DNA of 64,000 nucleotides from Haplodiscus bocki (lineage: Eukaryota): the NCBI GenBank assembly GCA_965655095.1, contig OZ296658.1:17484001-17548000 (forward strand), given 5' to 3'. Below are positions 2,759 through 22,150 of the stretch, in pieces. The notes beneath the pieces were generated by a model that was not told the DNA's origin, did no database searches, and saw only the letters and a list, made by a program, of their open reading frames with translations. Position 1 is the first letter of the stretch, and the number at the start of each line of letters is the position of its first letter. The position numbers and the translations under genes are program-made.

Positions 2759-3201
2759 GTCACATGATCGGCGGTAAGACAGCCTTCTTACCATCAGAGA
2801 CCTCTCATTGGCTCTTACAGTAATTGGATAAGTAGCTACTAGATGTTAAACTCCGATTTCGCAGCACTTGGTGGTGATTGATGCAAATTTTCAGTGTTCT
2901 TGCTCCGTAAATTAAATATGGCGGAACAAGATAGGTAATAGGCGTTTGTTTATGTGCAACAAAACCTCAAATTGTATTGTATCCAATTTAAAGTGCTCCA
3001 TTGAAAGGGTACGGTGTACCATCTATGTTCTGCAATTCCTTCAGTTTTAGTTTTTTGTACTTGTAATGAATTCTGGATTTATTATAGTCGTTCAAATTCT
3101 TTTCTTGTCTTGTACAAGTGTATTCGTCTACGCTAGTGTTTTTATGTCTGAACAGTGATCAAATCCGACGTCTTCGGACAGTGGTGTGGTGCACTTTTTT
3201 G
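2759..3201 (+). promoter_or_regulatory. Possible Pol II promoter and first two coding exons of an unidentified gene (MAEQDSDQIRRLRTVVWCTFL...)
   Basis: E-box-like GTCACATGAT (2759), ATTGG boxes (2807, 2823), TCAGT initiator (2891) and AATATGGCG start context (ATG 2918). A donor AG|GTAATA at 2935 and an AG|exon 3156-3201|GTAAAT splice in frame. No convincing downstream exon was found. Confidence 0.3.
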
Positions 3202-4418
3202 GTAAATTTCGCGTAATGAAATCGGATGTGAATCATTGGGCCGAAAAAAACCAAGCTTGTTACGTTCAACCCGCGTTTTATTTTATCGTTCACATGTCAC
3301 ATTTATCGCATAATTGCGCAACTTTTATTCGGTTCTGGCCTTGATTTTCTACCCCATTTTTTGGATCAGTTTGTCCCTTTGTTCATGTCGGAGAGCCAAA
3401 TTTCGAAAATTAGCTTTTGAAGGTGTTTTTTTTGTAGACCAAACGCCCAAAAAAACCGGTGTTCGGCCGGAAACTCACGTTTGGGACATCCTGTCAATAC
3501 TTTTTGCTGATCGGTTACTATCATCAATTTCATTAGAACTTTTTTCAGTCAAAGTTTTTGCTCGTGAAAAAGTTGGGTCCTCAACGCGAGAAATATCCTT
3601 ACTTATAACTTGAATTTCCATATGTTTTCAGTAAGTTTTTCTTCAATTTTTTTTCATCGGAAATTGTCTGTAGCATTGCAGGCATCCATCACATGTTCAA
3701 CAACTCACCACGCAGTAAATTTCCGTTAGTCAATGGGTGGCGTCTTTCAATTTTTTTCAGCTTTCAATTGGTCTTTAAAGTGCTTTCTGGTAATGAAAGA
3801 CCCGAACAAATATATATCCCGAGAAAACTTCAAGATTATAACTTTTCATCGGAACCTTCATCCACTGGGTCTCAATTGAATATTTTGATTTTTTTCGACA
3901 TTTCTGTGTGTCAAGGGCTCACACGTTACAGTTCCCGTGACTTAACTGGACTTGGACTTCGAAATTTTACAGTCCCACTTTCTTTCGACAATGGTAATAT
4001 CAATGGCGAGGTGTTGGATTGGGATCATTGAGAAAGAAGGCTGGAAACACCATTTTTTGATAAGCAGCGAACTTGTAGCGTACCGTACTGTCTTTGGATA
4101 TCATCAAACTTGTGATTGGAAAATCGAAATTATTATCCGTTGCGTCTTCAACGGGCATTCTCTGTAGAAGAATGGTAGTCGGGTGGACCTTTGTACTGTG
4201 AGTTCAATTCCTCGTCAAGCAGTGAAGAGAAGCTGTTCAACGTAAGCGCTCAACGTTTTTTTCCTTCGAACCATTACACATTGCTTTTCGAAATTCACAA
4301 GAACTTCTACTTCGTTTTCATAGTTGGTGAGAGTTTTCTTCGCTACGTACTTTTCATATTTTTCAGAAAGATAGCTAGTTATTGGAAGTTTTTGTGATTT
4401 TGGATCAGCTTTCTTAGC

Positions 4419-4618
4419 NNNNNNNNNNNNNNNNNNNNNNNNNNNNNNNNNNNNNNNNNNNNNNNNNNNNNNNNNNNNNNNNNNNNNNNNNNNNNNNNNN
4501 NNNNNNNNNNNNNNNNNNNNNNNNNNNNNNNNNNNNNNNNNNNNNNNNNNNNNNNNNNNNNNNNNNNNNNNNNNNNNNNNNNNNNNNNNNNNNNNNNNNN
4601 NNNNNNNNNNNNNNNNNN
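4419..4618. other. Assembly gap (200 N)
   Basis: Run of n; contiguity of the two sides is not guaranteed. Confidence 0.99.
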
Positions 4619-4942
4619 TAAGAAAGTCTCCAAAGCTTACACTGTTATTAGTTTTGTAAATTTGCCTTGCTAAACCGCGCGAACAAAGTTGCGTAAGTTC
4701 TACTAGCAAGGACTTGGTGAGCAAAGAAAGAGTATGAAATAAGAGATGAATTATTTGATGAATATACGGAAATGGCCGTTAATTTCATAAATGTAAATGA
4801 GCATAAGATAAGATTAAATATCGGGATAGTAAGATTATTAAGAGCTTAGAATTGAGCAATCCAAATTATTAAAATACAGCAATAATTTTCCGCATTAACT
4901 TCAAGAAAATATTACAAATTATTGAACTCAATTTTATTAAGA

Positions 4943-5446
4943 ATGGCAGCTAATAACGATTCTCCTCGATCTCCTCCTTTGAATGAGCAGAGGCCTAATA
5001 ATCAGAGGCTAGGGATTGAAATTCCGTTAGGCCTTCCCGAACACCTGCCCCAAGAAGAGATGACTCCGTCTCCAGTGGTTCCAGATGAGGATCACGATCA
5101 CTTTCTGGGGTTATACTACCGCGTAGATGTTGAGGCGTTAGACGAATGGGCCACAACAACAAGGTTCATGAGGGGGAGTATTGGATACATCGTGCAAGAG
5201 CCGGAGATCACTGATAACTTCAAACAATTCTTAATCATTATGTACGGCTCCAACTGGGAAAAGAGAGTTCTCAGTTACCAAGTAATGATAATAGAACAAC
5301 TGCATGCACTTATAACTGGATACAGTAAATTGACCAGTCGAATAAAGCGGGCCTGGTTAGACCAGTTCGATTCTTGGAGTCCAAGTCGACTTCAAGCACA
5401 AATCAAAGGGCTCGCGGAGTCCGGAGGTTTCTTTGAAATTGAATAA
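4943..5446 (+). CDS. Orphan intronless ORF, 167 aa from the first ATG (MAANNDSPRSPP...GGFFEIE); probably an element accessory protein
   Basis: ATG in AGAATGG context; P/N/E-rich N-terminus followed by a globular-looking region. Hairpins and AATAAA (5549-5554) follow the stop. A stop-interrupted upstream frame (...AKKEYEIRDELFDEY..., ...IIELNFIKNGS*) overlaps the start. No family recognised. Confidence 0.55.
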   Translation: MAANNDSPRSPPLNEQRPNNQRLGIEIPLGLPEHLPQEEMTPSPVVPDEDHDHFLGLYYRVDVEALDEWATTTRFMRGSIGYIVQEPEITDNFKQFLIIMYGSNWEKRVLSYQVMIIEQLHALITGYSKLTSRIKRAWLDQFDSWSPSRLQAQIKGLAESGGFFEIE

Positions 5447-5491
5447 GCCTTCGGGCTTTACTTTAGGTGGCGCGGGATTAACCTGCGCCAC
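5445..5491 (+). other. Two hairpins immediately after the ORF stop
   Basis: AAGCC-TTCG-GGCTT (cUUCGg tetraloop, 5445-5458) and GTGGCGCGGG-ATTAA-CCTGCGCCAC (10 bp with one G.U pair). Confidence 0.6.
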
Positions 5492-5820
5492 AATTATATT
5501 CTGCTTCCGTTCCAGTGCTGCATTAAAGTAAGATAAAAATTGCACAAGAATAAATACTTTATAAAATTTTTATCAACAATATGAGTAGGTTAAATTTATT
5601 CAATTCTTTAAAGAATCAATAGCTGAGAACAATAAATAGTATAAATTTACAAATTTCCAAAAAGAAGTTGGAAGTTTTCATCAATTTATAAACTAGGTTG
5701 AGGTATACAGTTTAGATTTTTTGACTAGAACGAATGATCACATCCGTCTTTCCTAGCCCAGGCATTGCCTTTGCTTTTCTCTCTTTTACTTTTAGATTTT
5801 ACTAATCTTATCTGATTCAA

Positions 5821-6434
5821 TTTTGTCTACAACCTTGGTAACATGCCGTAATAGCAGTCCACCAGGTCAAGTCTCTTAGATCCCAATTTGTCCGTACCAA
5901 GAGTTAAATCTTGTGGATTTATCAGACGGGATGCCAGATTTTATCTAAGACTCGGGTAACATGCCATAAAAGCAGTCTACCGAGTCAGGTCCCTTAGGTC
6001 CTCTTTTTTGTCAAGCGTGAACCGCTGACGAGGAGATTACATGCATTTTACTTTTAGATTAAGTTGTTCCTTTTAGCCTTTTATTTAAACCCGAGTAACC
6101 TGCCTTAGCATAGCAACTGGGCACAGATCTTAAGTTCCCCGTATTTCCAACCTTGAGTAAATCTTCAGGATTTATTGGAGGGGTTAAATGTTTTAGGTTT
6201 TATCTACAGCTCAGGTATAGCTCGCAAAAGCGGCACCTGGTGATTTCTCTTAGTCCCTTTTTTAACTCGTACGCGGAAATTTCTTCGCGACTTATCGAGA
6301 GGGATTGTTTAGAAAAAATATTTTAGGTTTTATCTACAACTCAGGTATAGCTCGCAAAAGCGGCACCTGGTGATTTCTCTTGGTCCCTTTTTAACTCGTA
6401 CGCGGCAATTTCTTCGCGACTTACCGAGAGGGAT
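5821..6434 (+). repeat. Five diverged ~100-112-nt two-hairpin modules (5821-5932, 5939-6037, 6079-6185, 6198-6305, 6328-6434)
   Basis: Shared TTTT(A/G)T(C/T)TA start and a (C/T)CTT(A/G)(A/G) hinge. Stems differ in sequence but keep pairing. Modules 4 and 5 are a near-identical 130-bp duplication. Confidence 0.7.
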
Positions 6435-6611
6435 TACTTAGGAGAAAATGATCAGTGAGATTTACTCTACTAGATCAAGGCAAAGTTGCAACTTACGGAT
6501 ACCAGAGCTGGGTAGGGATGATGGGGAATCGACTGCTGGGAGAGACTTCGCTGAATGATCCAGGGAAATAATGCTGATAACTCGTAATTCTTTCAAAATA
6601 ATCTAATCCAG

Positions 6612-6964
6612 TATTTTCGCTGATAAGCGTTATGCGGCTAAGTCAGAATTTGACTTAGAATATTTTCGCTGGTAAGCGTTTTGCGGCTAAGTCAGAATTT
6701 GACTTAGAATATTTTCGCTGACGAGCGTTTTGCGGCTAAGTCAGAATTTGACTTAGAATATTTTCGCTGATAAGCGTTTTGCGGCTAAGTCAGAATTTGA
6801 CTTAGAATATTTTCGCTGATAGGCGTTTTGCGGCTAAGTCAGAATTTGACTTAGAATATTTTCACTGATAAGCGTTTTGCGGCTAAGTCAGAATTTGACT
6901 TAGAATATTTTCGCTGATAAGCGTTTAGCGGCTAAGTCAGAATTTGACTTAGAATATTTTCGCT
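6612..6964. repeat. 49-bp minisatellite, 7 full copies plus 10 bp
   Basis: Unit TATTTTCGCTGATAAGCGTTTTGCGGCTAAGTCAGAATTTGACTTAGAA starting at 6612, 6661, 6710, 6759, 6808, 6857, 6906 and 6955 (partial). Contains the inverted repeat CTAAGTCA-N5-TGACTTAG. Confidence 0.97.
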
Positions 6965-7082
6965 CGCTCCAAGAGAAGAGTAGAATTGGGAGAGTAAGAG
7001 GATAAGAAAAGAAGAAAAGTTAACAGCGATGGGTAAAAGGGTTTCGCCTCGGGTAATAAGGCAAGTGAGCGGGAGCGAGCGT

Positions 7083-7171
7083 CTGAAAATTGTGGCTGAG
7101 CACTGGGTATTTATACCCCGTTTTGGTCACGTGACCTAGCATGTCGATCATGCAACCAATAGGAAAATCCC
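7083..7171 (-). promoter_or_regulatory. Leftward Pol II core promoter
   Basis: Minus-strand order: GGGATTTTCC (kappaB-like, 7162-7171), ATTGG (7156-7160), palindromic E-box GGTCACGTGACC (7125-7136), TATAAATA (7115-7108) and TCAG with its A at 7084, 31 nt from the first T of the TATA box. Confidence 0.6.
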
Positions 7172-7649
7172 TCGAGGATGGGCGAATTAGAATTTTTATT
7201 TTCTGTAAAATTAAATCTTGAAATTGTGCAATTTCAACTTTGTAAATCGAGCTGTCAGTTATTTTAATCTTGCCGTCGTAAAGTCTACCAATATTTATTT
7301 GTAAACTTCCATATCAGCTTTGTAGCCAACTTGTCTCACTTATCTATTCACCATTTCCTGCCTGCCAGGGTCTTTTGTTTGTTTCGCCCAAATGGGTTTT
7401 GCAACTTCAGCCTGCCATCCGGGTAAGTCAAATATTAATTCTTTCGTAATCTCATGAATTTCGCAAGTCAAGTTTGAATAGCAAATACACGAACTGCACT
7501 AATCACTTTGAGTATTTATCTGAGAATTACAAATTTTCGAGGCCTTCATTTATCGCCGAAAGCTCTTGAGGTTAGTTTAAATCTTTCGTTAACTTTAACT
7601 TAGGAAATAGCGCCTTTTCTAAGATTTGAGCGTTCCCTGTAACGCGATA

Positions 7650-10600
7650 AATATGTCATCCCAGCAAAATGATTGTCCACTACTTTTTCTGTTGGACGAC
7701 TGAAAAGGAATGCTCCCGGACAGGCTCACTCTGACGATTTCCTTTTATCGCTTACTGCTTTTTGGCTGAGAAAATCCAGTCAACGAACGTATGCTAGCTT
7801 GTTTTTCAACTGTAACAGTCTGTTTTCTGATCCTATTATTTCTCACCACAGTTCCTTTCTACGACAAAAGCTTGGCTCCTGGGCATGTTTAAACCGCCGA
7901 CTTCAGCGTTCCTTGGACTGTCCATAAAAACTGTGCTTTAACCAACAGCTAGGGGAGACTTCGACTTTACCTTTAAATTGTGTTCTATCACAAACGGAGC
8001 TCTCAGTAGAGTTTTTCGTTTGGCGGCAAAGCACTTCTCGCGAGAAGAATTAAAGTACCGACACCCTTTTATACCATAGCGCCATAAGGTACGGGGCTGT
8101 AATCAACTAGGTTACTGAAGCATAGCATTTGTTTTTGCCGACTGTGCCGTCGCATCAGGATTTCTCTCTGCGTTTTCTGAATTTACTAAAGTGGTGATGG
8201 TGCCGTTTAATCTGGAAGTGCCGATTGCCCCAAAGTCGGGACTGGTTGTAAGAAAGGAACTCCAGGCAACTGAGTTGACTTCAACTGAACTACAACTGTA
8301 CTTCTTCAGTTAATCACATGGGAAGTCGAATTATCGCGACGTTATTTGTGTTCAACGATAAAACAATTCTCTTTGAAGTCTGGAAGTGCCAAGTTCTGCA
8401 TATCCCATTTTGTGTATGGGTACACAGTTGAAAGCAACTTTTCAACTGGAGTTTGTCGTTTCACCTTCACAATATGTCATCCCAGCAAAATGATTGTCCA
8501 CTACTTTTTCTGTTGGACGACTGAAAAGGAATGCTCCCGGACAGGCTCACTCTGACGATTTCCTTTTATCGCATGCTGCTTTTTGGCTGAGAAAATCCAG
8601 TCAACGAACGTATGCTAGCTTGTTTTTCAACTGTAACAGTCTGTCTTCTGATCCTAATATTTCTCACCACAGTTCCTTTCTACGACAAAAGCTTGGCTCC
8701 TGGGCATGTTTGAACCGCCGACTTCAGCGTTCTTTGCACTGTCCATAAAAATTGTGCTTTAGCAAACTGAGCCACGGGAGACTTCGAGTTTACCTTTAGA
8801 TAGTGTTCTATCACAAACGGAGCTCTCAGTAGAGTTTTTTGTTTGGCGGCAAAGCACTTTTCGCGAGAAGAATTAAAGTAGTACCGACACCCTTTTATAC
8901 CATAGCGCCATAAAGTACGGGGCTGTAATCAACTGGGTTACTGAAACATAGCATTTGTTTTTGCAAACTGTGCCGTCGCATCAGGATTTCTCTCTGCGTT
9001 TCCTGACTTTACTAAAGTGGTGATGGTGCCGTTTAATCTGGAAGTGCCGATTGCCTCAAATTCGGGACTGGTTGTGAGAAAGGAACTCCAAGCAACTGAG
9101 TTGACTTCAACTGAACTACAACTGTACTTCTTCAGTTAATCACACGGGAAGTCGAATTATCGCGACGTTATTTGTGTTCAACGATAAAACAATTCTCTTT
9201 GAAGTCTGGAAGTGCCAAGTTCTGCATATCCCATTTTGTGTATGGGTACACAGTTGAAAGCAACTTTTCAACTGGAGTTTGTCGTTTCACCTTTACAGTA
9301 TGTCATCCCAGCAAAATGATTGTCCACTACTTTTTCTGTTGGACGACTGAAAAGGAATGCTCCCGGACAGGCTCACTCTGACGATTTCCTTTTATCGCAT
9401 ACTGCTTTTTGGCTGAGAAAATCCAGTCATTGAACGTATGCTAGCTTGTTTTTCAACTGTAACAGTCTGTCTTCTGATCCTAATATTTCTCACCACAGTT
9501 CCTTTCTACGACAAAAGCTTGGCTCCCGGGCATGTTTGAACCACCGACTTCAGCGTTCCTTGCACTGTCCAAAAAATTTGTGCTTTAGCAAACTGAGCCA
9601 CGGGAGACTTCCAGTTTACCTTTAGATAGTGTTTTATCACAAACGGAGCTCTCAGTAGAGTTTTTTGCTTGGCTGCAAAGCACTTCTCGCGAGAAGAATT
9701 AAAGTAGTACCGAAACCCTTTGATACCATAGCGCCATAAGGTACGGTGCTGTAATCAACTAGGTTACTGAACATAGCATTTGTTTTTGCAAACTGTGCCG
9801 TCGCATCAGGATTTCTCTCTGCGTTTTCTGACTTTACTAAAGTGGTGATGGTGCCGTTTAATCTGGAAGTGCCGATTGCCCCAAAGTCGGGACTGGTTGT
9901 AAGAAAGGAACTCGAATCAACTGAGTTGACTTCAACTGAACTACAACTGTACTTCTTCATTTAATCACACGGGAAGTCGAATTATCGCGACGTTATTTGT
10001 GTTCAACGATAAAACATTTCTCTGTGAAGTCTGAAAGTGCCAACTTCCGCATATCCCAAAATTTCTATTGGTACGCTGTTGGAAACAACTCTTCAACTGA
10101 ATTTTTCGTGTCACCATTACCATATATCATCCCAGCAAAAATGATTGTCCACTACTTTTTCTGTTGGACGACTGAAAAGGAATGCTCCCGGACAGGTTCA
10201 CTCTGACGATTTCCTTTTATCGCATACTGCTTTTTGGCTGAGAAAATCCAGTCAACGAACGTATGCTAGCTTGTTTTTCAACTGTAACAGTCTGTCTTCT
10301 GATCCTAAAATTTCTCAACACAGTTCATTTCTACGACAAAAGCTTGGCTCCTGGGCATGTTTGAACCACCGACTTCAGCGTTCCTTGCGCTGTCCATAAA
10401 ATTTGTGCTTTAGCAAACTGAGCCACGGGAGACTTCCAGTTTACCTTTAGATAGTGTTTTATCACAAACGGAGCTCTCAGTAGAGTTTTTTGTTTGGCTG
10501 CAAAGCACTTTTCGCGAGAAGAATTAAAGTAGTACCGAAACCCTTTGATACCATAGCGCCATAAGGTACGGTGCTGTAATCAACTAGGTTACTGAACATA

Positions 10601-13600
10601 GCATTTGTTTTTGCAAACTGTGCCGTCGCATCAGGATTTCTCTCTGCGTTTTCTGACTTTACTAAAGTGGTGATGGTGCCGTTTAATCTGGAAGTGCCGA
10701 TTGCCCCAAAGTCGGGACTGGTTGTAAGAAAGGAACTCGAATCAACTGAGTTGACTTCAACTGAACTACAACTGTACTTCTTCATTTAATTACACGGGAA
10801 GTCGAATTATCGCGACGTTATTTGTGTTCAACGATAAAACATTTCTCTGTGAAGTCTGGAAGTGCCAAGTTCTGCATATCCCATTTTGTGTATGGGTACA
10901 CAGTTGAAAGCAACTTTTCAACTGGAGTTTGTCGTTTCACCTTCACAATATGTCATCCCAGCAAATTGATTGTCCACTACTTTTTCTGTTGGACGACTGA
11001 AAAGGAATGCTCCCGGACAGGCTCACTTTGACGATTTCCTTTTATCGCATACTGCTTTTTGGCTGAGAAAATCCAGTCAACGAACGTATGCTAGCTTGTT
11101 TTTCAACTGTAACAGTCTGTCTTCTGATCCTAAAATTTCTCAACACAGTTCATTTCTACGACAAAAGCTTGGCTCCTGGGCATGTTTGAACCGCCGACTT
11201 CAGCGTTCCTTGCACTGTCCATAAAAACTGTGCTTTAACCACCAGGTACGGGAGACTTCGTCTTTACCTTTAAATTGTGTTCTATCACAAACGGAGCTCT
11301 CAGTAGAGTTTTTCGTTTGGCGGCAAAGCGCATCTCGCGAGAAGAATCAAAGTACCGACACCCTTTGATACCATAGCGCCATAAGGTACGGGGCTGTAAT
11401 CAACTAGGTTACTGAAGCATAGCATTTGTTTTTGCAAACTGTGCCGTCGCATCAGGATTTCTCTCTGCGTTTTCTGACTTTACTAAAGTGGTGATGGTGC
11501 TGTTGAATCTGGAAGTGCCGATTGCCCCAAAGTCGGGACTGGTTGTAAGAAAGGAACTCCAAGCAACTGAGTTGACTTCAATTGAACTACAACTGTACTT
11601 CTTCAGTTAATCACACGGGAAGTCGAATTATCGCGACGTTATTTGTGTTCAACGATAAAACATTTCTCTGTGAAGTCTGGAAGTGCCAAGTTCTGCATAT
11701 CCCATTTTGTGTATGGGTACACAGTTGAAAGCAACTTTTCAACTGGAGTTTGTCGTTTCACCTTCACAATATGTCATCCCAGCAAAATGATTGTCCACTA
11801 CTTTTTCTGTTGGACGACTGAAAAGGAATGCTCCCGGACAGGCTCACTTTGACGATTTCCTTTTATCGCATACTGCTTTTTGGCTGAGAAAATCCAGTCA
11901 ACGAACGTATGCTAGCTTGTTTTTCAACTGTAACAGTCTGTCTTCTGATCTTAATATTTCTCACCACAGTTCCTTTCTACGACAATAGCTTGGCTCCCGG
12001 GCATGTTTGAACCGCCGACTTCAGCGTTCTTTGCACTGTCCATAAAAAATGTGCTTTAGCCAATTGAGCTACGGGAGACTTCGATTTTACCTTTAGATAG
12101 TGTTCTGTCACAAACGGAGCTCTCAGTAGAGTTTTTTGTTTGGCGGCAAAGCGCTTTTCGCGAGAAGAATTAAAGTAGTACCGACACCCTTTGATACCAT
12201 AGCGCCATAAGGTACGGGGCTGTAATCAACTAGGTTACTGAAGCATAGCATTTGTTTTTGCAAACTGTGCCGTCGCATCAGGATTTCTCTCTGCGTTTTC
12301 TGACTTTACTAAAGTGGTGATGGTGCTGTTGAATCTGGAAGTGCCGATTGCCCCAAAGTCGGGACTGGTTGTAAGAAAGGAACTCCAAGCAACTGAGTTG
12401 ACTTCAATTGAACTACAGCTGTACTTCTTCAGTTAATCACACGGGAAGTCGAATTATCGCGACGTTATTTGTGTTCAACGATAAAACATTTCTCTGTGAA
12501 GTCTGGAAGTGCCAAGTTCTGCATATCCCATTTTGTGTATGGGTACACAGTTGAAAGCAACTTTTCAACTGGAGTTTGTCGTTTCACCTTCACAATATGT
12601 CATCCCAGCAAAATGATTGTCCACTACTTTTTCTGTTGGACGACTGAAAAGGAATGCTCCCGGACAGGCTCACTTTGACGATTTCCTTTTATCGCATACT
12701 GCTTTTTGGCTGAGAAAATCCAGTCAACGAACGTATGCTAGCTTGTTTTTCAACTGTAACAGTCTGTCTTCTGATCCTAATATTTCTCACCACAGTTCCT
12801 TTCTACGACAAAAGCTTGGCTCCTGGGCATGTTTGAACCGCCGACTTCAGCGTTCCTTGCACTGTCCATAAAAACTGTGCTTTAGCAAACTGAGCTACGG
12901 GAGACTTCGACTTTTCCTTTAAATTGTGTTCTATCACAAACGGAGCTCTCAGTAGAGTTTTTCGTTTGGCGGCAAAGCACATCTCGCGAGAAGAATTAAA
13001 GTACCGACACTCTTTTATACCATAGCGCCATAAGGTACGGGGCTGTAATCAACTAGGTTACTGAAACATAGCATTTGTTTTTGCAAACTGTGCCGTCGCA
13101 TCAGGGTTTCACACTGCGTTTTTTTGACTCTACTATAGTGGTGATGGTGACGTTTAATCTGGAAGTGCCGATTACCCCATGTTCGGGACTGGCTGTAAGA
13201 AAGGAATTCCGGGCAACTGAGTTGACTTCAACTGAACTACAACTGTACTTCTTCAGTTAATCACCAGGGAAGTCGAATTATCGCTACTTTTTTTGTGTTC
13301 AACAGGAAAGCAATTCTCTGTGAAGTCTGAAAGTGCCAACTTCCGCATATCCCAAAATTTCTATTGGTACGCTGTTGGAAACAACTCTTCAACTGAATTT
13401 TTCGTGTCACCTTTACAATATGTCATCCCAGCAAATTGATTGTCCACTACTTTTTCTGTTGGACGACTGAAAAGGAATGCTCCCGGACAGGCTCACTTTG
13501 ACGATTTCCTTTTATCGCATACTGCTTTTTGGCTGAGAAAATCCAGTCAACGAACGTATGCTAGCTTGTTTTTCAACTGTAACAGTCGGTCTTCTGATCC

Positions 13601-15060
13601 TAATATTTCTCACCACAGTTCCTTTCTACGACAAAAGCTTGGCTCCTGGGCATGTTTGAACCGCCGACTTCAGCGTTCCTTGCACTGTCCATAAAAACTG
13701 TGCTTTAGCAAACTGAGCTACGGGAGACTTCGACTTTTCCTTTAAATTGTGTTCTATCACAAACGGAGCTCTCAGTAGAGTTTTTCGTTTGGCGGCAAAG
13801 CGCATCTCGCGAGAAGAATCAAAGTACCGACACCCTTTTATACCATAGCGCCATAGGGTACGGGGCTGCAATCAACTAGGTTACTGAAACATAGCATTTG
13901 TTTTTGCAAACTGTGCCGTCGCATCAGGGTTTCACACTGCGTTTTCTGACTCTACGAAAGTGGTGATGGTGACGTTTAATCTGGAAGTGCCGATTACCCC
14001 ATGTTCGGGACTGGCTGTAAGAAAGGAATTCCGGGCAACTGAGTTGACTTCAACTGAACTACAACTGTACTTCTTCAGTTAATCACCAGGGAAGTCGAAT
14101 TATCGCTACTTTTTTTGTGTTCAACAGGAAAGCAATTCTCTGTGAAGTCTGAAAGTGCCAACTTCCGCATATCCCAAAATTTCTATTGGTACGCTGTTGG
14201 AAACAACTCTTCAACTGAATTTTTCGTGTCACCATTACCATATATCATCCCAGCAAAAATGATTGTCCACTACTTTTTCTGTTGGACGAAAGAAAAGGAA
14301 TGCTCCCGGACATGCGCACTCTGTCGATTTCCTTTTAACGCAAACTGCCCATTGGTTCAGAAGATCTAACCAACGAAGGTATGCTAGCTTGTTTTTCAAC
14401 TGTAATAATCTGTCTTCTGATCGTAATATATCTTACCACAGTTTCTTTCTACTACAAAAGCTTGGCTCCTGGGCATGTTTTAACCGCCGACTTCAGCGTT
14501 CTTTGCACTGTCCATAAAAAATGTGCTTTAGCCAACTGAGCTACGGGAGACTTCGAGTTTACCTTTAGGTAGTGTTCTATCACAAACGGAGCTCTCAGTA
14601 TAGTTTTTCGTTTGGCGGCAAAGCACTTCTCGCGAGAAGAATTAAAGTACCGACACCCTTTTATACCATAGTGCCATAAGGTACGGGGCTGTAATCAACT
14701 GAGTTGCTGAAACATGGCATTTGTGTCCTGCAAACTGTGCCACTGCATCAGGATTTTTCTCTCCGTTTTCTGACCTTACTAAAGTGGTGATGGTGCCGTT
14801 CAGTCTGGAAGTGCCGATTGCCCCAAATGCGGGACTGGTTGTAAGAAAGGAAATACAAGCAACTGAGTTGCATTCAACTGAACTACAACTGTACTTCTTC
14901 AGTTAATCACACGGGAAGTCGAATTATCGCTACGTTTTTTGTGTTCAACAGGAAAGCAGTTCTCTGTGAAGTCTGGAAGTGCCAACTTGCGCATATCCCA
15001 TACAGTCTGAGTACGCTGTTGAAAGCAAGTCTTCCACCCGATTTCATCGTGTCACCTTTA
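7650..15060 (-). repeat. Domain A: nine ~821-826-bp pentameric monomers, all tRNA subunits degenerate
   Basis: Equivalent positions at 7673, 8494, 9320, 10145, 10970, 11791, 12617, 13440 and 14263. The best subunit keeps GGTTCAAAC in most copies but has disrupted acceptor and anticodon arms. Confidence 0.92.
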
Positions 15061-18000
15061 CAGTATGTCATCACCGCAAATAGGTTCTGCACGACCTTTT
15101 CTGTTGGACAGATAAAAAGTAATGCTCCAGGACAGACGCACTCTGTCGGTTTCCTTTTATCGCAAACTGTTTTTTGGTTCGGAAGATCTAATCAACGAAG
15201 GTATGCTAGCTTGTTTTTCAACTGTAACAGTCTGTCTCTTGATCATAACATTTCTCGCCACAGTTTCTTTCTACGAAAATCTGTGGCTCCTGGACAGGTT
15301 CGAACTGCCGACTTCAGCATTACCTGTACTGTCTATATGTGGGATGCTGGAACCAACTGAGTTACGGGAGATTTCAATTTCACCTCCCTTTCTGTTCTGT
15401 CGCAAACGGAGTTCTTAATAGAGACTTTTGTTGGGCAGCAAAGCACTTCTCGCGGGAGGAATTGAAGTACCGACATCCACATTTACCATTGTGCTAGAAC
15501 GAATGGCGCTGTAACCAACTGAGCTACTGAATCGTAGCGTGTGTTTTCTACAAACTGTGCCATCGCATCAGGGTTTTCTCTATGTTTCCTTGCTTTACTA
15601 AAAAGGTGATGGTGCCGGTCAATTTGGAAAAACAAATTATCCCAAATTCCGAACTGTCCGTAAGTTAAAAGTTTAATTCAATTGAGTTGAGTTCAAGTGG
15701 ACCATAATCCTACTTGTGCACTCAAACAAATCGGAAGTCTAACTATCACTCGGTTTTTTGTGCCGAACGGGAAAACAATTCTGACAAGAAGTAGTGAATT
15801 GCCAACTGCGGCACCTCTCAAACTGTCTATCGTTACGCCGTTGCATCCGTGTCTTCTACTGGAGGTTATTGTGTAAGGTTTAGAATCTGTCACTCTCTAA
15901 AAGCATCTTCCATTACCTGTTCTTTTCGGTGAATAAAAGGTGTTGCCCCCAGTAAGGCTGATCCTGTCGATTTCCTTTCATCGTGTACTGCCTATTGGTA
16001 CGAAAGATCCGACCAACGAGGGTACGCTATCTTTTTTCAACTGATACACTCTGTCCCTTGCTTATCACATTTCTCACCACAGTTTCTTCCTTCACAAAAA
16101 GTGTTGCTCCCGGGCAGGTTTACCGACTTCCGCATATCTTGTAATGTCTAAATGAGCGATGCTTTAACTCTTTAGGCTCGGGAAGATTTGAAAAGTTTCT
16201 CTTCCTTGTGTCCTCCATTTCCTTGTATGTTCGGTAACCGAAAGGTGTTGTCCTGGTCCGGCCGACCTTGCCGACTTCCTTTCATCGCATACTGCCTATT
16301 GACTGGTGCGAAAATCCGACCAACGGGGGTACGCCAGCTTTTTTCAATTTTAACAGTGTCCCTGATTATCACATTTCTCACCACAGTTACTTCATTTGGA
16401 AAAGTGTTGCTCCTGGACAGATTCGAACTGCTAAATTCCGCATACCTTGTACTGTCGATAACTACGGTTCTTTGACCTACTGAGCTATGGGAGCGTGGAC
16501 AGTTATCCCTACTTTGTGTTCTATGCGAAACGAAGTTCTCTGTAGACTTTTCTGTTTGCCGATGAAGTACTTCTCTTGAGAAGAATCGAAGTATTGACAT
16601 CCACATATACCATACTGCCGATAGGTAAAGCGCTGTAATGAACTGAGCAAACGAAACGTACGGCTTTTTCTACAAGCGGCCATCGCATCAGGATTTTCCT
16701 CTACGTTTTCTGGCTTGTCTAAAAAGGTTATGGTGCCGGTCAATCTGAACGTGCTGATTGTCCCAAATTCGGAACTGTCTGTAAGTAAAGAGCTTAATGC
16801 AATTGGGATGAGTTCAACTGGACCGCAACCCTACTTTTACATCCAGTCAAATTGGAGTTCTAACTATCGCTCGGTTTTTTGTTCTGAACGGGAAAACAAT
16901 TCTGACTGTTTTCGCAGAGAGATCGCAAATTGCCAACTTTGACACATCTCAAACTGTCTATCGGTACGCCAATGTATGCTAGTGTTCAATTGGAGGTTGA
17001 TGTGTGACCTGTAGAACCTGTTACGCGTTAAATGATTCTTACATTAAATTATCTGTTCTTCAACCGAATAGGATTTCTCCGGGATGGCTCAAAATGTCAA
17101 GTTCTTTCTGTCTCAGACTGCCTTTTGGAACGGGGATCTCACCAATGGAGCTATGGAGGCTCCACATTTAATTGTTACTTTCTATCTCTTCATTGTCACA
17201 AATCTTATAACAGTTTAAGTGTTGTTTTCAGAAGGTGATGCTTTCAGGCACGCTCGAATTGCCAACTTCAGCATGGTTCAAATTGTCTATCGTTACGCTG
17301 TCGCATGCGACTCTTCAACTGGAGGTTGATGTGTAACGTTTAGAATCTGTCACACTGCGAAGACGTCCTCCATTTCCTTCTATGTTCGGTAACTGGAAGG
17401 TGTTGTCCTGGTCCGACTGACCGTGCCGATTTCCTTTCATCGCATACTGCCTATTGACTGGTGCGAAAATCCGACCAACGGGGGTACGCTAGTTGTTTTC
17501 AACGGTTACAGTCTGTCACCTGATTATCACATTTCTCACCACAGTTCTTTTCATCACAAAAAGTGTTGCTCCCGGGCTTGTTCGAACTGTCGACTTAAGC
17601 TTATGCTGTTTTGTCTATAAGTACGGCGCTCTAAGCAACTGAGTTACTGGAGCTTGGCATGATATCCTTACAATAAGTTCTCTCGCGTTTGAAATTGTCA
17701 CTAAAGTTTCTGTGCTTAGTGATGAAGCACAGCGTTAAAAAATTTATCACGGAAAAGCTAAAACGGCCGAAATCCGCCTCTACTACCTCTACTATATTGC
17801 ACATCTTAGACTGTCTATAGGTACACCGTTGTATGCGAGTCTTCAACTGCAGGTTGACATGTAACGTTTAGAATCTGTCGCACTGCGAAAACGTCCTCCA
17901 TTTCCTTGTATGTTCGGTAACCGAAAGGTGTTGTCCTGGTCCGGCCGACCTTGCCGACTTCCTTTCATCGCATACTGCCTATTGACTGGTGCGAAAATCC

Positions 18001-21000
18001 GACCAACGGGGGTACGCCAGCTTTTTTCAATTTTAACAGTGTCCCTGATTATCACATTTCTCACCACAGTTACTTCATTTGGAAAAGTGTTGCTCCTGGA
18101 CAGATTCGAACTGCTAAATTCCGCATACCTTGTACTGTCGATAACTACGGTTCTTTGACCTACTGAGCTATGGGAGCGTGGACAGTTATCCCTACTTTGT
18201 GTTCTATGCGAAACGAAGTTCTCTGTAGACTTTTCTGTTTGCCGATGAAGTACTTCTCTTGAGAAGAATCGAAGTATTGACATCCACATATACCATACTG
18301 CCGATAGGTAAAGCGCTGTAATGAACTGAGCAAACGAAACGTACGGCTTTTTCTACAAGCGGCCATCGCATCAGGATTTTCCTCTACGTTTTCTGGCTTG
18401 TCTAAAAAGGTTATGGTGCCGGTCAATCTGAACGTGCTGATTGTCCCAAATTCGGAACTGTTTGTAAGTAAGGAGTGTTATACAACTGATTTGAGTTCAA
18501 GTGGAATACAATCCGACTTTTACATTTAGTCAAATCGGAAGTATAACTATCGTTGGGTTTTTCGTGCTGAATAGGAAAACAATTCTCTCAAGAAGTCGCT
18601 AAGTGCCAACTTCTGAACATCTCAAACTGTGTATAGGTACGCCGTTGTATGCGAGTCTTCAACTGTGGGTTCACGTGTCTTGTTTAGAATCTGTCATACT
18701 GCGAAAACATCTTCCCTTAGCTTTTCTCTTCGGTAACCGAAAAGTTTTGCCCCCGGTCAGTGTAACCCTGTCGATCCCCTCCCATCGCATACTGCCTGTT
18801 CATTGGTACGGAAGATCCGACCAACGAGGGTATGCTAGCTTTTAACGATTACAGTCTGTCCCTTGATTATCACCACAGTTTTCTCCACAAAAAATGTTGC
18901 TCCAGGGCAAGTTCGAACTTCCAACATCTGCTTTTGTTGTAATATGTATTAGTGCAATGCTCGAACCAACTTAGCTACGTTAGCTTGAAAAGTTTCCTTT
19001 GTTTGATTGTTCTTCCACGAAGCGAGTTCTGAAAAGAGTTTTTTTGTTTGGCAGCAAAGCACTTCTCGCGAGAAAAATCGAAGTACCGACATCCACATAC
19101 ACCATACCGCCCATAGGTACGGGGCTGTAATCAACTGAGCTACTGAATTATAAAGTGTGTTTTCCATAAACTGTACCACCGAATCAGGGTTTTTTTCTAC
19201 ATTTTCAACTTTACTAAAAAAGTAATGGTCCCGGTCAGTCTGGAAGTGCCGCTTCCCCTTAACCGGAACTGTTTTTAACTGAGTAGCTCTAAATTATGAG
19301 TTGACTTCAACAGAGCTACAACTGTACTTGTGCAGTAAGTCCCAAGGGAAGTCTAATTATCGCTACGTTCTTTGCGTTGAATGGGCAAACCATTCTCAGG
19401 AGAAGTCTCGCATTGCCCTTTTCCGCATATCACTTACTGACTAGCGTTAAGCCGTTGGAAGAAATTTTTCAATTGGAAGTTGACGTGAAACTCTTACAAT
19501 CTGTCAAACCCGAGGCGGTATTCCCCTAGTTTGTCTGTTCGGTAACCGAAAAAGAGTGCCGCCGGACGTGCTCCAAACTGCCGAGTTCCTTCAATCCAAA
19601 TACCCTACTGTTACGCGGGATCTAGCCAACGGAGCTGCGCAAGCTTGTTTTGTTAACTGTTACAATCTGTTTCTTGAATATTCCATTCCACATCACCGTT
19701 TCATCAAAAAAAGCATTACTCCCGGGCAGGATCGAGCTGCCGACTTCCGCATATTTTGTGCTGTCTATAAGTACGGTGCTCTCACCAAATGAGCTACGGG
19801 AGCTTGGGAAAGTTTTCTCTACTTTGTGTTCTATCAGAAACGGAGTCCTCAGTAGATTTTTCTGTTTGGTCGTAAAACACACCTCTGGAGAAGAATTGAA
19901 GTACTGGCATCCGCATATACCATACTGCCATTGGGTACGGTGCTGTAATCAACTGAGCTGTCTAAAAATAACGTGTTTTTTGCAAGCGGAAATTCCATCT
20001 GGATTTTCCTCCAGGTTTTCGGACTTCTCTAAAAAGATAATGGTGCCGGTGAATCTGACAGTGCCGATTATCCCAAGTTCGGCACTATCTGTAACTAAGG
20101 ATTTTAATACAAGTTAATTAGGTTCGAGTGGACCACAACTCTATTTTACATTTAGTCAAATAGTAAGTATAACTACCGTTAGGTTTTTCGTGCTGAAAAG
20201 GAGAGCAAATCTCACAAGTGGTCGCAAAGTGCGAACTTCTGCACATCTCACACTGTCTATAGGTAAGCCGTTGTATTCGAGTCTTCAGCTGTAGGTTGAC
20301 GTGTAACGTTTAGAATCTGTCACACTGCGAAGACGTCCTCCATTTCCTTCTATGTTCGGTAACTGGAAGGTGTTGTCCTGGTCCGACTGACCGTGCCGAT
20401 TTCCTTTCATCGCATACTGCCTATTGACTGGTGCGAAAATCCGACCAACGGGGGTACGCTAGTTGTTTTCAACGGTTACAGTCTGTCCCTTCACAATCAC
20501 TTTTCTCACGACAGTTTCCTCCTTGACAAAAAATAGTTGCTCCCGGACAGGTTCGAACTTCCTACATCTGCATTTGTTGTACTGTCTATAATTGTGATGC
20601 TCTAACCAACTGAGCTGGGGAGCTTGAAAAGTTTCCTTCAAGCTATGTTTCTTCGCATATTAAGTTCTCAATAGAGTTTTTTTTTGTTTGGCAGCAAAGC
20701 ACTTCTCGCGAGAAAAATCGAAGTACCGACATCCACTTATACCATACTGCCCTTAGGTACGGGGCTGTAATCCACTGAGCTATTGAAAAATAGCGTGTGT
20801 TTTCCACAAACTGTACCTTCGCATCAGGGTTTTTCTCCAGGTTTTCAATTTTATCAAAAAGTTGACGGTCTCGGTCAGTCTGGAAGTGCCGATTGCCCTA
20901 AACCGGAATTGTCTTTAACTTAGGAGCTGTAAGTTATGAGTTGACTTCAACTACGCTACAACTGTACTTGTGCAGTTAGTCACAACGGATGTGTAATTAT

Positions 21001-22150
21001 CGCTACGTTTTTTGCGTTGAAAAGGAAAACAATTCTCAGTGGAAGTCTCGCAGTCTGTTTTCGCGCAGATCTGATACTGTCTAGCGGTACGCCGTTGTAA
21101 GAAATTCTCCAGATGGAGGTTGAGGTAAAACTCTTACAATCTGTGAAACCCGAGGGGATTTTTCACTATTTTGTCTGTTCGTTAACCGAAAAAGAATGCT
21201 GCCGGACGGGCACCAAACTGCCGAGTTCCTTCTATCCAAATACTCTATTATTACGCGGGATCTAACCAGCGGAGCTTCGCAAGCTTGTTTTGCTAACTGT
21301 TACACTCCGTTTCCTGATTATTCCCTTTCTCATACACAGTTTCTTCGAAGTTTTACTACCGGGCAGGTGCGAAATGGCGTCTACCGCATATCTTGTAATG
21401 TCTATAACTACGGTGCTCTAACCAACTGAGCTACGAGAGCTCGGATTTTTTCTCTATTTTGTCTTCTCTCGGATCTCGCAAACGGAGTTCTCACTAGACT
21501 TTTTCTGTTTGGTATGGAGAACTTCTGTCGAGAAGAATCGAAGTATTGACATCCACATATACCATACTGCCAATTTGCAAGGGGCTGTAATGAGCTTAGC
21601 TATTGAAAAACGACGTGTGTTTTTTTACAAGTGGCCATTGGATTTAGATTTTTCTATACCTTTTCTGACTTGCCTAAAAATGTAATGGTTCCGGTCAAGC
21701 TGAAGGTGCCAGTTGTCCCAAAATGGGGTACTGTCTGTATGTAAGTAGTTTTATACAAGTGTTTTGAGTTCAATTGGAGCACAACCCTACATTCATATTT
21801 AGTCAAATCGGAAGTAAAACTATCTAACTATCGCTAGGTTTTTTGTGCTGAATAGGAAAACAATTCTTGAAAGTAGTCGCGAAGTGCCAACTTCTGCACA
21901 TCTCAGACTGTCTATAGCTACACCGTTGTATGCGAGTCTTCAACTGCAGGTTGACGTGTAACGTTTAGAATCTGTCACACTGCGAAGACGTCCTCCATTT
22001 CCTTCTATGTTCGGTAACTGGAAGGTGTTGTCCTGGTCCGACTGACCTTGCCGATTTCCTTTCATCGCATACTGCCTATGGACTGGTGCGAAAATCTGAC
22101 CAACGGGGTTACGCTAGCTGTTTTCAACGGTTACAGTCTGTCACCTGATT
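15061..22150 (-). repeat. Domain B: diverged, rearranged mosaic of subunit types (boundaries approximate)
   Basis: Irregular subunit order and fusion junctions (e.g. ~16210). A ~570-bp duplication of 16211-16778 recurs at offset 1683, and a foreign 67-bp filler sits at 17731-17797. Confidence 0.8.
19717..19803 (-). pseudogene. tRNA-Ile(UAU)-like copy with stems intact but T54C and D-loop changes
   Basis: GCTCCCG TA GCTC ATTTGGTGA GAGC A CCGTA CTTATA [13 nt] A TGCGG AAGTC GGCAG CTCGATC CTGCC CGGGAGT A. Confidence 0.7.

Follow-up and report, generated by a model that had tools for sequence, protein, structure and literature searches.

Structured cis-acting repeats are known from viruses, retroelements and long non-coding RNAs. 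ENE triple-helix stability elements have been reported in transposon transcripts, and the A-repeat of Xist consists of tandem double-hairpin units in a long non-coding RNA that are thought to serve as a multivalent protein platform. Internal tandem repeats are also common in non-autonomous DNA transposons, e.g., DINE-1 and Galileo; for the DNA transposons of cnidarians, to our knowledge, almost nothing is known on structured cis-acting repeats. Here we analyze a short array of repeats inside a multi-copy, transposon-like element of ~3.2 kb, which lies in a stretch of 64,000 nucleotides (assembly GCA_965655095.1 of Haplodiscus bocki, contig OZ296658.1, positions 17,484,001 to 17,548,000, forward strand; the whole stretch is referred to as the window). 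An original prediction, made by a model from the letters of the window alone, had listed stems in five tandem modules of this array. We found that the five modules are homologous, that their stems carry compensated changes, and that they evolve under purifying constraint; below we consider whether they act as RNA.

The array occupies positions 5821-6450 of the window and consists of five head-to-tail modules, M1-M5, with a unit of ~115 nt (range ~110-130 nt):

5821-5938, plus strand: M1 (stems read in the window; covariance-model match)
5939-6047, plus strand: M2 (stems read in the window; its hairpin 2 contains a 25-nt stretch described below)
6079-6197, plus strand: M3 (stems read in the window; covariance-model match)
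6198-6327, plus strand: M4 (stems read in the window; covariance-model match; similarity to M5 in Tandem Repeats Finder (TRF) and BLAST comparisons)
6328-6450, plus strand: M5 (a 92% copy of M4)

There is a 31-nt remnant between M2 and M3 (6048-6078), and a TTTT-type run (four T) is found at each module junction. TRF and BLAST detect just the similarity of M4 to M5 (92%) and that of hairpin 1 in M1 to hairpin 1 in M2 (78%). A covariance model built from eleven M2 orthologues only, with the originally predicted structure, retrieved M1 (E = 2e-10), M3 (0.002), M4 (0.006) and M5 (0.008), all at full length, in register and on the plus strand; the next match had an E-value of 0.14. The second covariance model identified 57 modules in 175 kb, every one within copies of the same element and always in the orientation of its open reading frame (ORF), and none in the 56-kb tRNA array of the window. 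Given no structural information, MAFFT brought the 53 modules of window and relatives into register, with a mean column identity of 62%. Because both the covariance models and MAFFT align them in register, M1-M5 are diverged tandem duplicates of one unit, i.e., homologous modules with a common two-hairpin architecture. The array is found at the same place and in the same orientation in 10 of 11 lineages (one copy is without everything to the right of the spacer), and its size varies from 3 to 5 modules across relatives, in several of which M5 is not a separate unit. Of the 18 loci fetched, 8 share the 25-nt stretch in hairpin 2 of M2 without a single difference; a comparison of this core to IMG/VR, which bears on the idea of a viral origin, produced no match.

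All stems quoted in the original prediction were found where it had placed them, and the compensatory base changes that it had proposed are present as well. In the five modules of the window, 84% of cells (model pairs) form, and 12 of 31 pairs are changed on both sides yet still paired. As a control we used slid alignments, in which the 3' partners are shifted by 1-3 columns while the relatedness of the modules is preserved; here 31-42% of cells were paired, and the number of doubly changed pairs was 1-2, compared to 12 in the real alignment. For 54 distinct modules, the paired fraction was 79% of cells versus 71.5% in shuffles, and double changes were detected in 22 of 31 pairs and in 188 cells, compared to 74 +/- 7 cells in shuffles and 16-41 in slid controls. 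Compensation can also be seen within module types in alignments based on sequence only. For example, two upper-stem pairs switch between UA and CG among the copies of M1, and an inner pair of M3 is formed by GC in six copies and by UA in four. In M4/5, four pairs are compensated; 94.2% of cells are paired versus 92.4 +/- 0.3% in shuffles (none of 500 shuffles reached this value), and there are 7 doubly changed cells versus 2.4 expected (1 of 500 shuffles). Across module types, the compensation at column pairs 14/45 and 17/43 is visible in the sequence-only MAFFT alignment. A further predicted feature, the 3' bulge A(T/C)TTA(T/C), was found in M1, M3, M4 and M5 of the window, as claimed, but in relatives just M3 and M4/5 have retained it.

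We compared the divergence of the modules to that of the codon positions of the element's ORF in the same copies. The p-distance in modules M2-M4 was 0.05-0.25 (5-25%), similar to 0.05-0.18 (5-18%) in codon positions 1 and 2, whereas third codon positions differed by 0.16-0.58 (16-58%), i.e., 2-4 times more than either the modules or the non-synonymous positions. The modules are therefore under constraint. The conservation profile showed that the remaining non-coding sequence of the element is similarly conserved, so that purifying constraint, compared to synonymous sites, acts on the modules and on most of the element.

The strand on which the modules might function was analyzed using non-canonical pairs, consensus energies and stability. 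The original prediction held that non-canonical pairs are mostly G.U on the plus strand and took this to point to a plus-strand RNA. The counts did not bear this out: over all pairs there are 133 G.U and 113 A.C cells, so the bias on which the plus-strand claim rested is not seen. Among the well-kept pairs, the numbers are 57 and 33, respectively, with 15 of the 33 A.C cells coming from a single pair. By consensus energy, M1 folds better on the minus strand (-21.3 versus -14.5) and M4/5 on the plus strand (-20.5 versus -12.1), with no preference in M2 or M3; the sliding profile along the entire element gave the same mixed picture for the modules.

The element itself was delimited by comparison with its relatives:

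4619-7647, plus strand: visible part of the ~3.2-kb multi-copy element (collinear with the related loci L001-L017)
4943-5446, plus strand: ORF167, 167 amino acids (at least 220 relatives, purifying selection, no family match)
7635-7647, unstranded: right terminal inverted repeat (compared with the ends of the relatives)
7648-7654, unstranded: right copy of the 7-bp target duplication (flank comparison)

From 4619 to ~7650, the window is collinear with L001-L017 at 68-97% identity; the left end of the window copy is hidden by a run of N (4419-4618, 200 bases) in the left part of the element. In relatives the element is 2931-3486 bp long and ends sharply, with flanks beyond that are unrelated to one another. 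The terminal inverted repeats are 13-17 nt long, the left one being read in relatives and the right one in the window. In seven copies, 31 of the 49 positions of the 7-bp flanks agree, versus ~12 expected by chance; in one copy the agreement is 7 of 7. Terminal inverted repeats, a duplication of fixed length and many dispersed copies with unrelated flanks are the attributes of a class II transposon, and the original assignment of the array to a mobile element agrees well with these short termini, the 7-bp target duplication and the hundreds of copies. The sole conserved ORF in the element is ORF167, which has no family match; having no transposase, the gene on which both autonomy and a superfamily name would rest, the element is therefore non-autonomous. 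At least 220 relatives were identified, all but one in the ENA assembly ERZ26859043 (coral-type); one copy lies in the Joint Genome Institute (JGI) contig Ga0126343, which, according to a preprint, is from a metagenome of the coral Cyphastrea sp. Judging from the metagenome and the neighboring genes, the host of the element is most likely a stony coral.

Several observations were made on the surroundings of the element. In the window, a tandem array of ~56 kb (7650-64000; period ~823 bp, partly with a higher order of 1681 bp) starts exactly where the right end of the element is. It includes 27 Rfam matches to tRNA-Leu on the minus strand (22192-54850), with the anticodons tag, taa and gag as determined by ARAGORN; the units from 7650 to 22000 contain no tRNA at the Rfam threshold. 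A tRNA-targeted insertion of the element was considered and rejected, because only the window copy adjoins tRNA genes. In locus L002, a complete copy of the element is accompanied, at a distance of 1.7 kb, by a partial and inverted one that has diverged further and in which four modules can be recognized (3195-3813, minus strand); a tRNA-Cys (5237-5311) is located between the two. In locus L011, a reverse-transcriptase fragment (RVT_1, 1251-1748) is found 1.9 kb upstream of an element copy and is probably an unrelated neighbor.

ORF167 is the only conserved ORF of the element, with relatives that are 62-98% identical. In most pairs, the ratio of nonsynonymous to synonymous substitution rates (dN/dS) lies at 0.07-0.15, and dS ranges from 0.7 up to saturation. 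Sequence searches in Pfam, PDB and PHROG produced no match. Slx4 was tried as an identity and rejected as noise, since it matched 3 of 14 members with a best E-value of 0.007. The first AlphaFold model was poor, with a predicted local distance difference test (pLDDT) score of 42; AlphaFold2 with a 40-sequence alignment reached a pLDDT of 77, with residues ~50-165 above 90. The model shows a disordered N-terminus and a confident helical bundle at residues ~50-165; Foldseek retrieved no similar structure from PDB or BFVD. An exhaustive profile search yielded 153 representatives, the sole named one being a turtle protein with seven short repeated stretches, which was judged to be a chance match. 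Distant relatives of 200-230 amino acids are present in another assembly. For a distant homologue of 233 amino acids in locus L018 (541-12516), also from another assembly, no modules were found around the gene; its neighbors are a MATH/TRAF gene, an ORF with a fusion-glycoprotein domain of the Monjiviricetes type, and a full pol of a long terminal repeat (LTR) retroelement.

Other candidate signals of the element lie on both sides of the modules:

5447-5491, plus strand: two hairpins straight after the stop codon of ORF167 (nine copies: pairing, consensus energy)
5549-5554, plus strand: AATAAA, ~100 nt past the ORF167 stop (kept in most copies of the alignment)
6563-7013, unstranded: second array, 49-bp unit, ~7-9 repeats
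7019-7170, unstranded: promoter-like block, the best conserved non-coding block (alignment and conservation profile)
7423-7428, plus strand: GTAAGT (kept in 7 of 9 lineages; the preceding 50 nt are variable)

The hairpin at 5447-5456 has the four-base loop TTCG and the one at 5467-5491 has 10 bp. In nine copies they are 96-97% paired, all wobbles are G.U on the plus strand, and the consensus energy is -20 on the plus strand versus -3 on the minus strand; unlike the modules, these hairpins are clearly a plus-strand RNA structure. With this structure just upstream of the modules, the element demonstrably uses RNA hairpins. Two further hairpins are kept at 5655-5673 and 5723-5758, and AATAAA may be a polyadenylation signal. 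Each 49-bp unit of the second array contains two small perfect hairpins, and the relatives have a unit of 57-59 bp with a similar hairpin at the same place; therefore, the unit turns over but the type of repeat persists. In the promoter-like block, we found TATTTATA (7108-7115), CACGTG (7128-7133) and CCAAT (7156-7160); the GGTCACGTGA motif around CACGTG occurs twice in most relatives. Along the minus strand, an inverted CCAAT comes first, then an E-box and a TATA box, followed 31 nt on by the initiator-like TCAGA with its A at 7084. By general promoter architecture, from which the orientation was deduced, the block at 7019-7170 may be a promoter that acts on the minus strand, ~630 nt rightwards of the modules, with a transcript running leftwards through both arrays. 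The GTAAGT motif suggests a splice donor, i.e., the end of a plus-strand exon near the right terminus.

A possible reading of these results, which we adopt tentatively and with somewhat less than even confidence, is that the modules are a cis-acting array of structured RNA in a transcript of the element, on either strand. A single unit of ~110-130 nt would have been duplicated in tandem with subsequent divergence, and the unit would have been preserved for the ability of one strand to fold into two imperfect hairpins: (i) hairpin 1, with basal, upper and apical stems; (ii) hairpin 2, in which a one-sided U-rich bulge separates the inner stem from a C-rich/G-rich outer stem. Three to five such units in the non-coding center of a non-autonomous element with short terminal inverted repeats and a 7-bp target duplication would present a multivalent platform for a protein, in cis, within the element transcript. 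A candidate partner is the orphan helical protein ORF167 of the element itself. Bulged stems with loops of 5-30 nt suit single-stranded folding more than cruciform extrusion, and we infer that the modules act as RNA rather than DNA. A stronger proposal is that a coral-specific mobile element carries, in more than 200 copies, a self-contained unit of RNA and protein, the RNA half being 3-5 tandem copies of a structured module to which ORF167 binds, with purifying selection acting on both. We regard it as doubtful; if true, this unit would be a transposon-borne multivalent RNA platform without described counterpart.

Three alternatives have to be weighed against the RNA array, and several of our observations weigh against it as well. 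The alignment of 54 modules was fitted to the structure, and there are about four independent module types, so that few events are counted many times. With the sequence-only MAFFT alignment of all 53 modules, RNAalifold predicted no pairs, because the bulges move the register by one column between module types; therefore, the covariation between types depends on structure-guided alignment. The M2 orthologues show no covariation (85.6% paired versus 85.3% in shuffles), M2 being the best conserved module. Thermodynamic stability is modest: in the window, z-scores are -3.1 for M2, -3.0 for M4, -3.9 for M5, -0.85 for M1 and -0.5 for M3, and for the 53 modules the mean z is from -0.4 to -1.7 on either strand; M3 is indistinguishable from shuffles. 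These points would be expected if the repeats had no structural function, i.e., if a unit with chance inverted repeats was duplicated, the compensation comes largely from fitting the alignment to the structure, and the conservation reflects sequence-level constraint or copy correction. Against this, the slid controls keep the relatedness of the modules and nevertheless fall far below the observed double changes; furthermore, columns 14/45 and 17/43 and the signals within M1, M3 and M4/5 do not depend on a structural alignment. We consider an absence of structural function unlikely, and the two-hairpin fold to be probably, though by no means certainly, real.

A role at the DNA level, which we also consider rather unlikely if less so than an absence of structural function, would make the modules and the 49-bp repeats either the upstream architecture of the promoter-like block at 7019-7170 or sites bound by a transposase or a factor of the host; they would be read in double-stranded form or while transiently single-stranded. 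The data that speak for it are also those that count against an RNA array: taken together, the G.U/A.C counts, consensus energies and z-scores reveal no overall strand bias, and loops and bulges are conserved as well as stems (above 90% for loops and linkers, with the TTTTATCTA start, GGTA and CTTAG), therefore the sequence itself is read; the 25-nt stretch of M2, identical in 8 loci, speaks for a DNA-level role as well. Tandem repeats next to promoters are a common enhancer architecture, and the modules are situated 650-1300 bp from the TATA box, with an apparent transcription unit on either side. It should be noted that the kept AATAAA is located between ORF167 and the modules, therefore the mRNA of the ORF may end before reaching them. 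What a DNA-level role does not explain is that the arms stay complementary while their sequence changes, which factor sites do not need; arms that are bulged and 7-30 nt apart would make poor cruciforms, and we know of no single-stranded stage of cut-and-paste elements with terminal inverted repeats. The modules might instead be separate small RNA genes or processing units, resembling small nucleolar RNAs (snoRNAs) or microRNA precursors or transcribed by polymerase III, with one or two per module. The discrete ~115-nt units, their conserved boundaries and the four T at each junction are consistent with this. However, runs of 4-6 T, which would stop polymerase III, occur within modules on both strands, there is neither a hinge between the hairpins nor a common 3' box, and hairpin 1 has just ~19-20 pairs and is without a lower stem. 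Moreover, the Rfam 15 scan of the window and 10 relatives, at the gathering score and at E <= 10, retrieved only tRNAs of the neighboring array, in agreement with the originally predicted lack of similarity to known families. A comparison by eye with the patterns of box C/D, H/ACA, Sm sites, the hammerhead core and polymerase III boxes, on which none of our conclusions is based, likewise showed no fit. Small RNA genes are thus the least probable of the explanations, and quite improbable.

With regard to significance, in this element, which lacks a transposase, an orphan protein is preserved along with over 2 kb of non-coding sequence, the latter constrained as tightly as the amino acids themselves; therefore, the element or its host reads far more than the termini. 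If the modules are RNA, they would constitute an additional, new family of folds, and their duplication in tandem with compensatory divergence would be a tractable case for study. A literature search found no other case in which a conserved orphan ORF is accompanied by repeats that are constrained and carry compensated hairpins, nor do we know of one.

The RNA array favored here can be compared to several described systems. For self-cleaving ribozymes (hammerhead and others), no match to curated covariance models was obtained, even at E <= 10. MicroRNA precursors have a stem of ~33 bp with a lower stem under the 22-nt duplex, whereas hairpin 1 of the modules consists of ~19-20 bulged pairs, hairpin 2 is broken by large loops, and no microRNA family is matched. 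Like H/ACA snoRNAs, the modules accommodate, within ~120 nt, a pair of hairpins that contain internal loops; they differ in that there is no single-stranded hinge, hairpin 2 beginning at the next base after hairpin 1, and no common 3' ACA, which in these snoRNAs is located three bases from the end (ACA follows M2 only), nor any Rfam match. With ENE elements the modules share a hairpin whose G-C-rich stems flank a U-rich internal loop, and the location in a mobile element. Yet in each of the five modules, and likewise in relatives, only the 5' strand carries the U run, while the 3' strand continues the helix; the modules are not ENE-like because the U-rich bulge is one-sided, as had been originally noted, and they also differ in having neither a kept A-rich tract downstream nor an Rfam match. 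The Xist A-repeat resembles the array in design only, with head-to-tail two-hairpin units, U-rich linkers and a putative role as a multivalent protein platform; its unit is ~25 nt, compared to ~115 nt with long bulged hairpins in the modules, which reside in a coral mobile-type element and have no sequence or Rfam relation to it. Finally, DINE-1 and Galileo share with the present element a variable number of internal tandem units between terminal inverted repeats, without a transposase; what sets the present units apart is that they are under purifying constraint, with compensated hairpins and a conserved non-transposase ORF.
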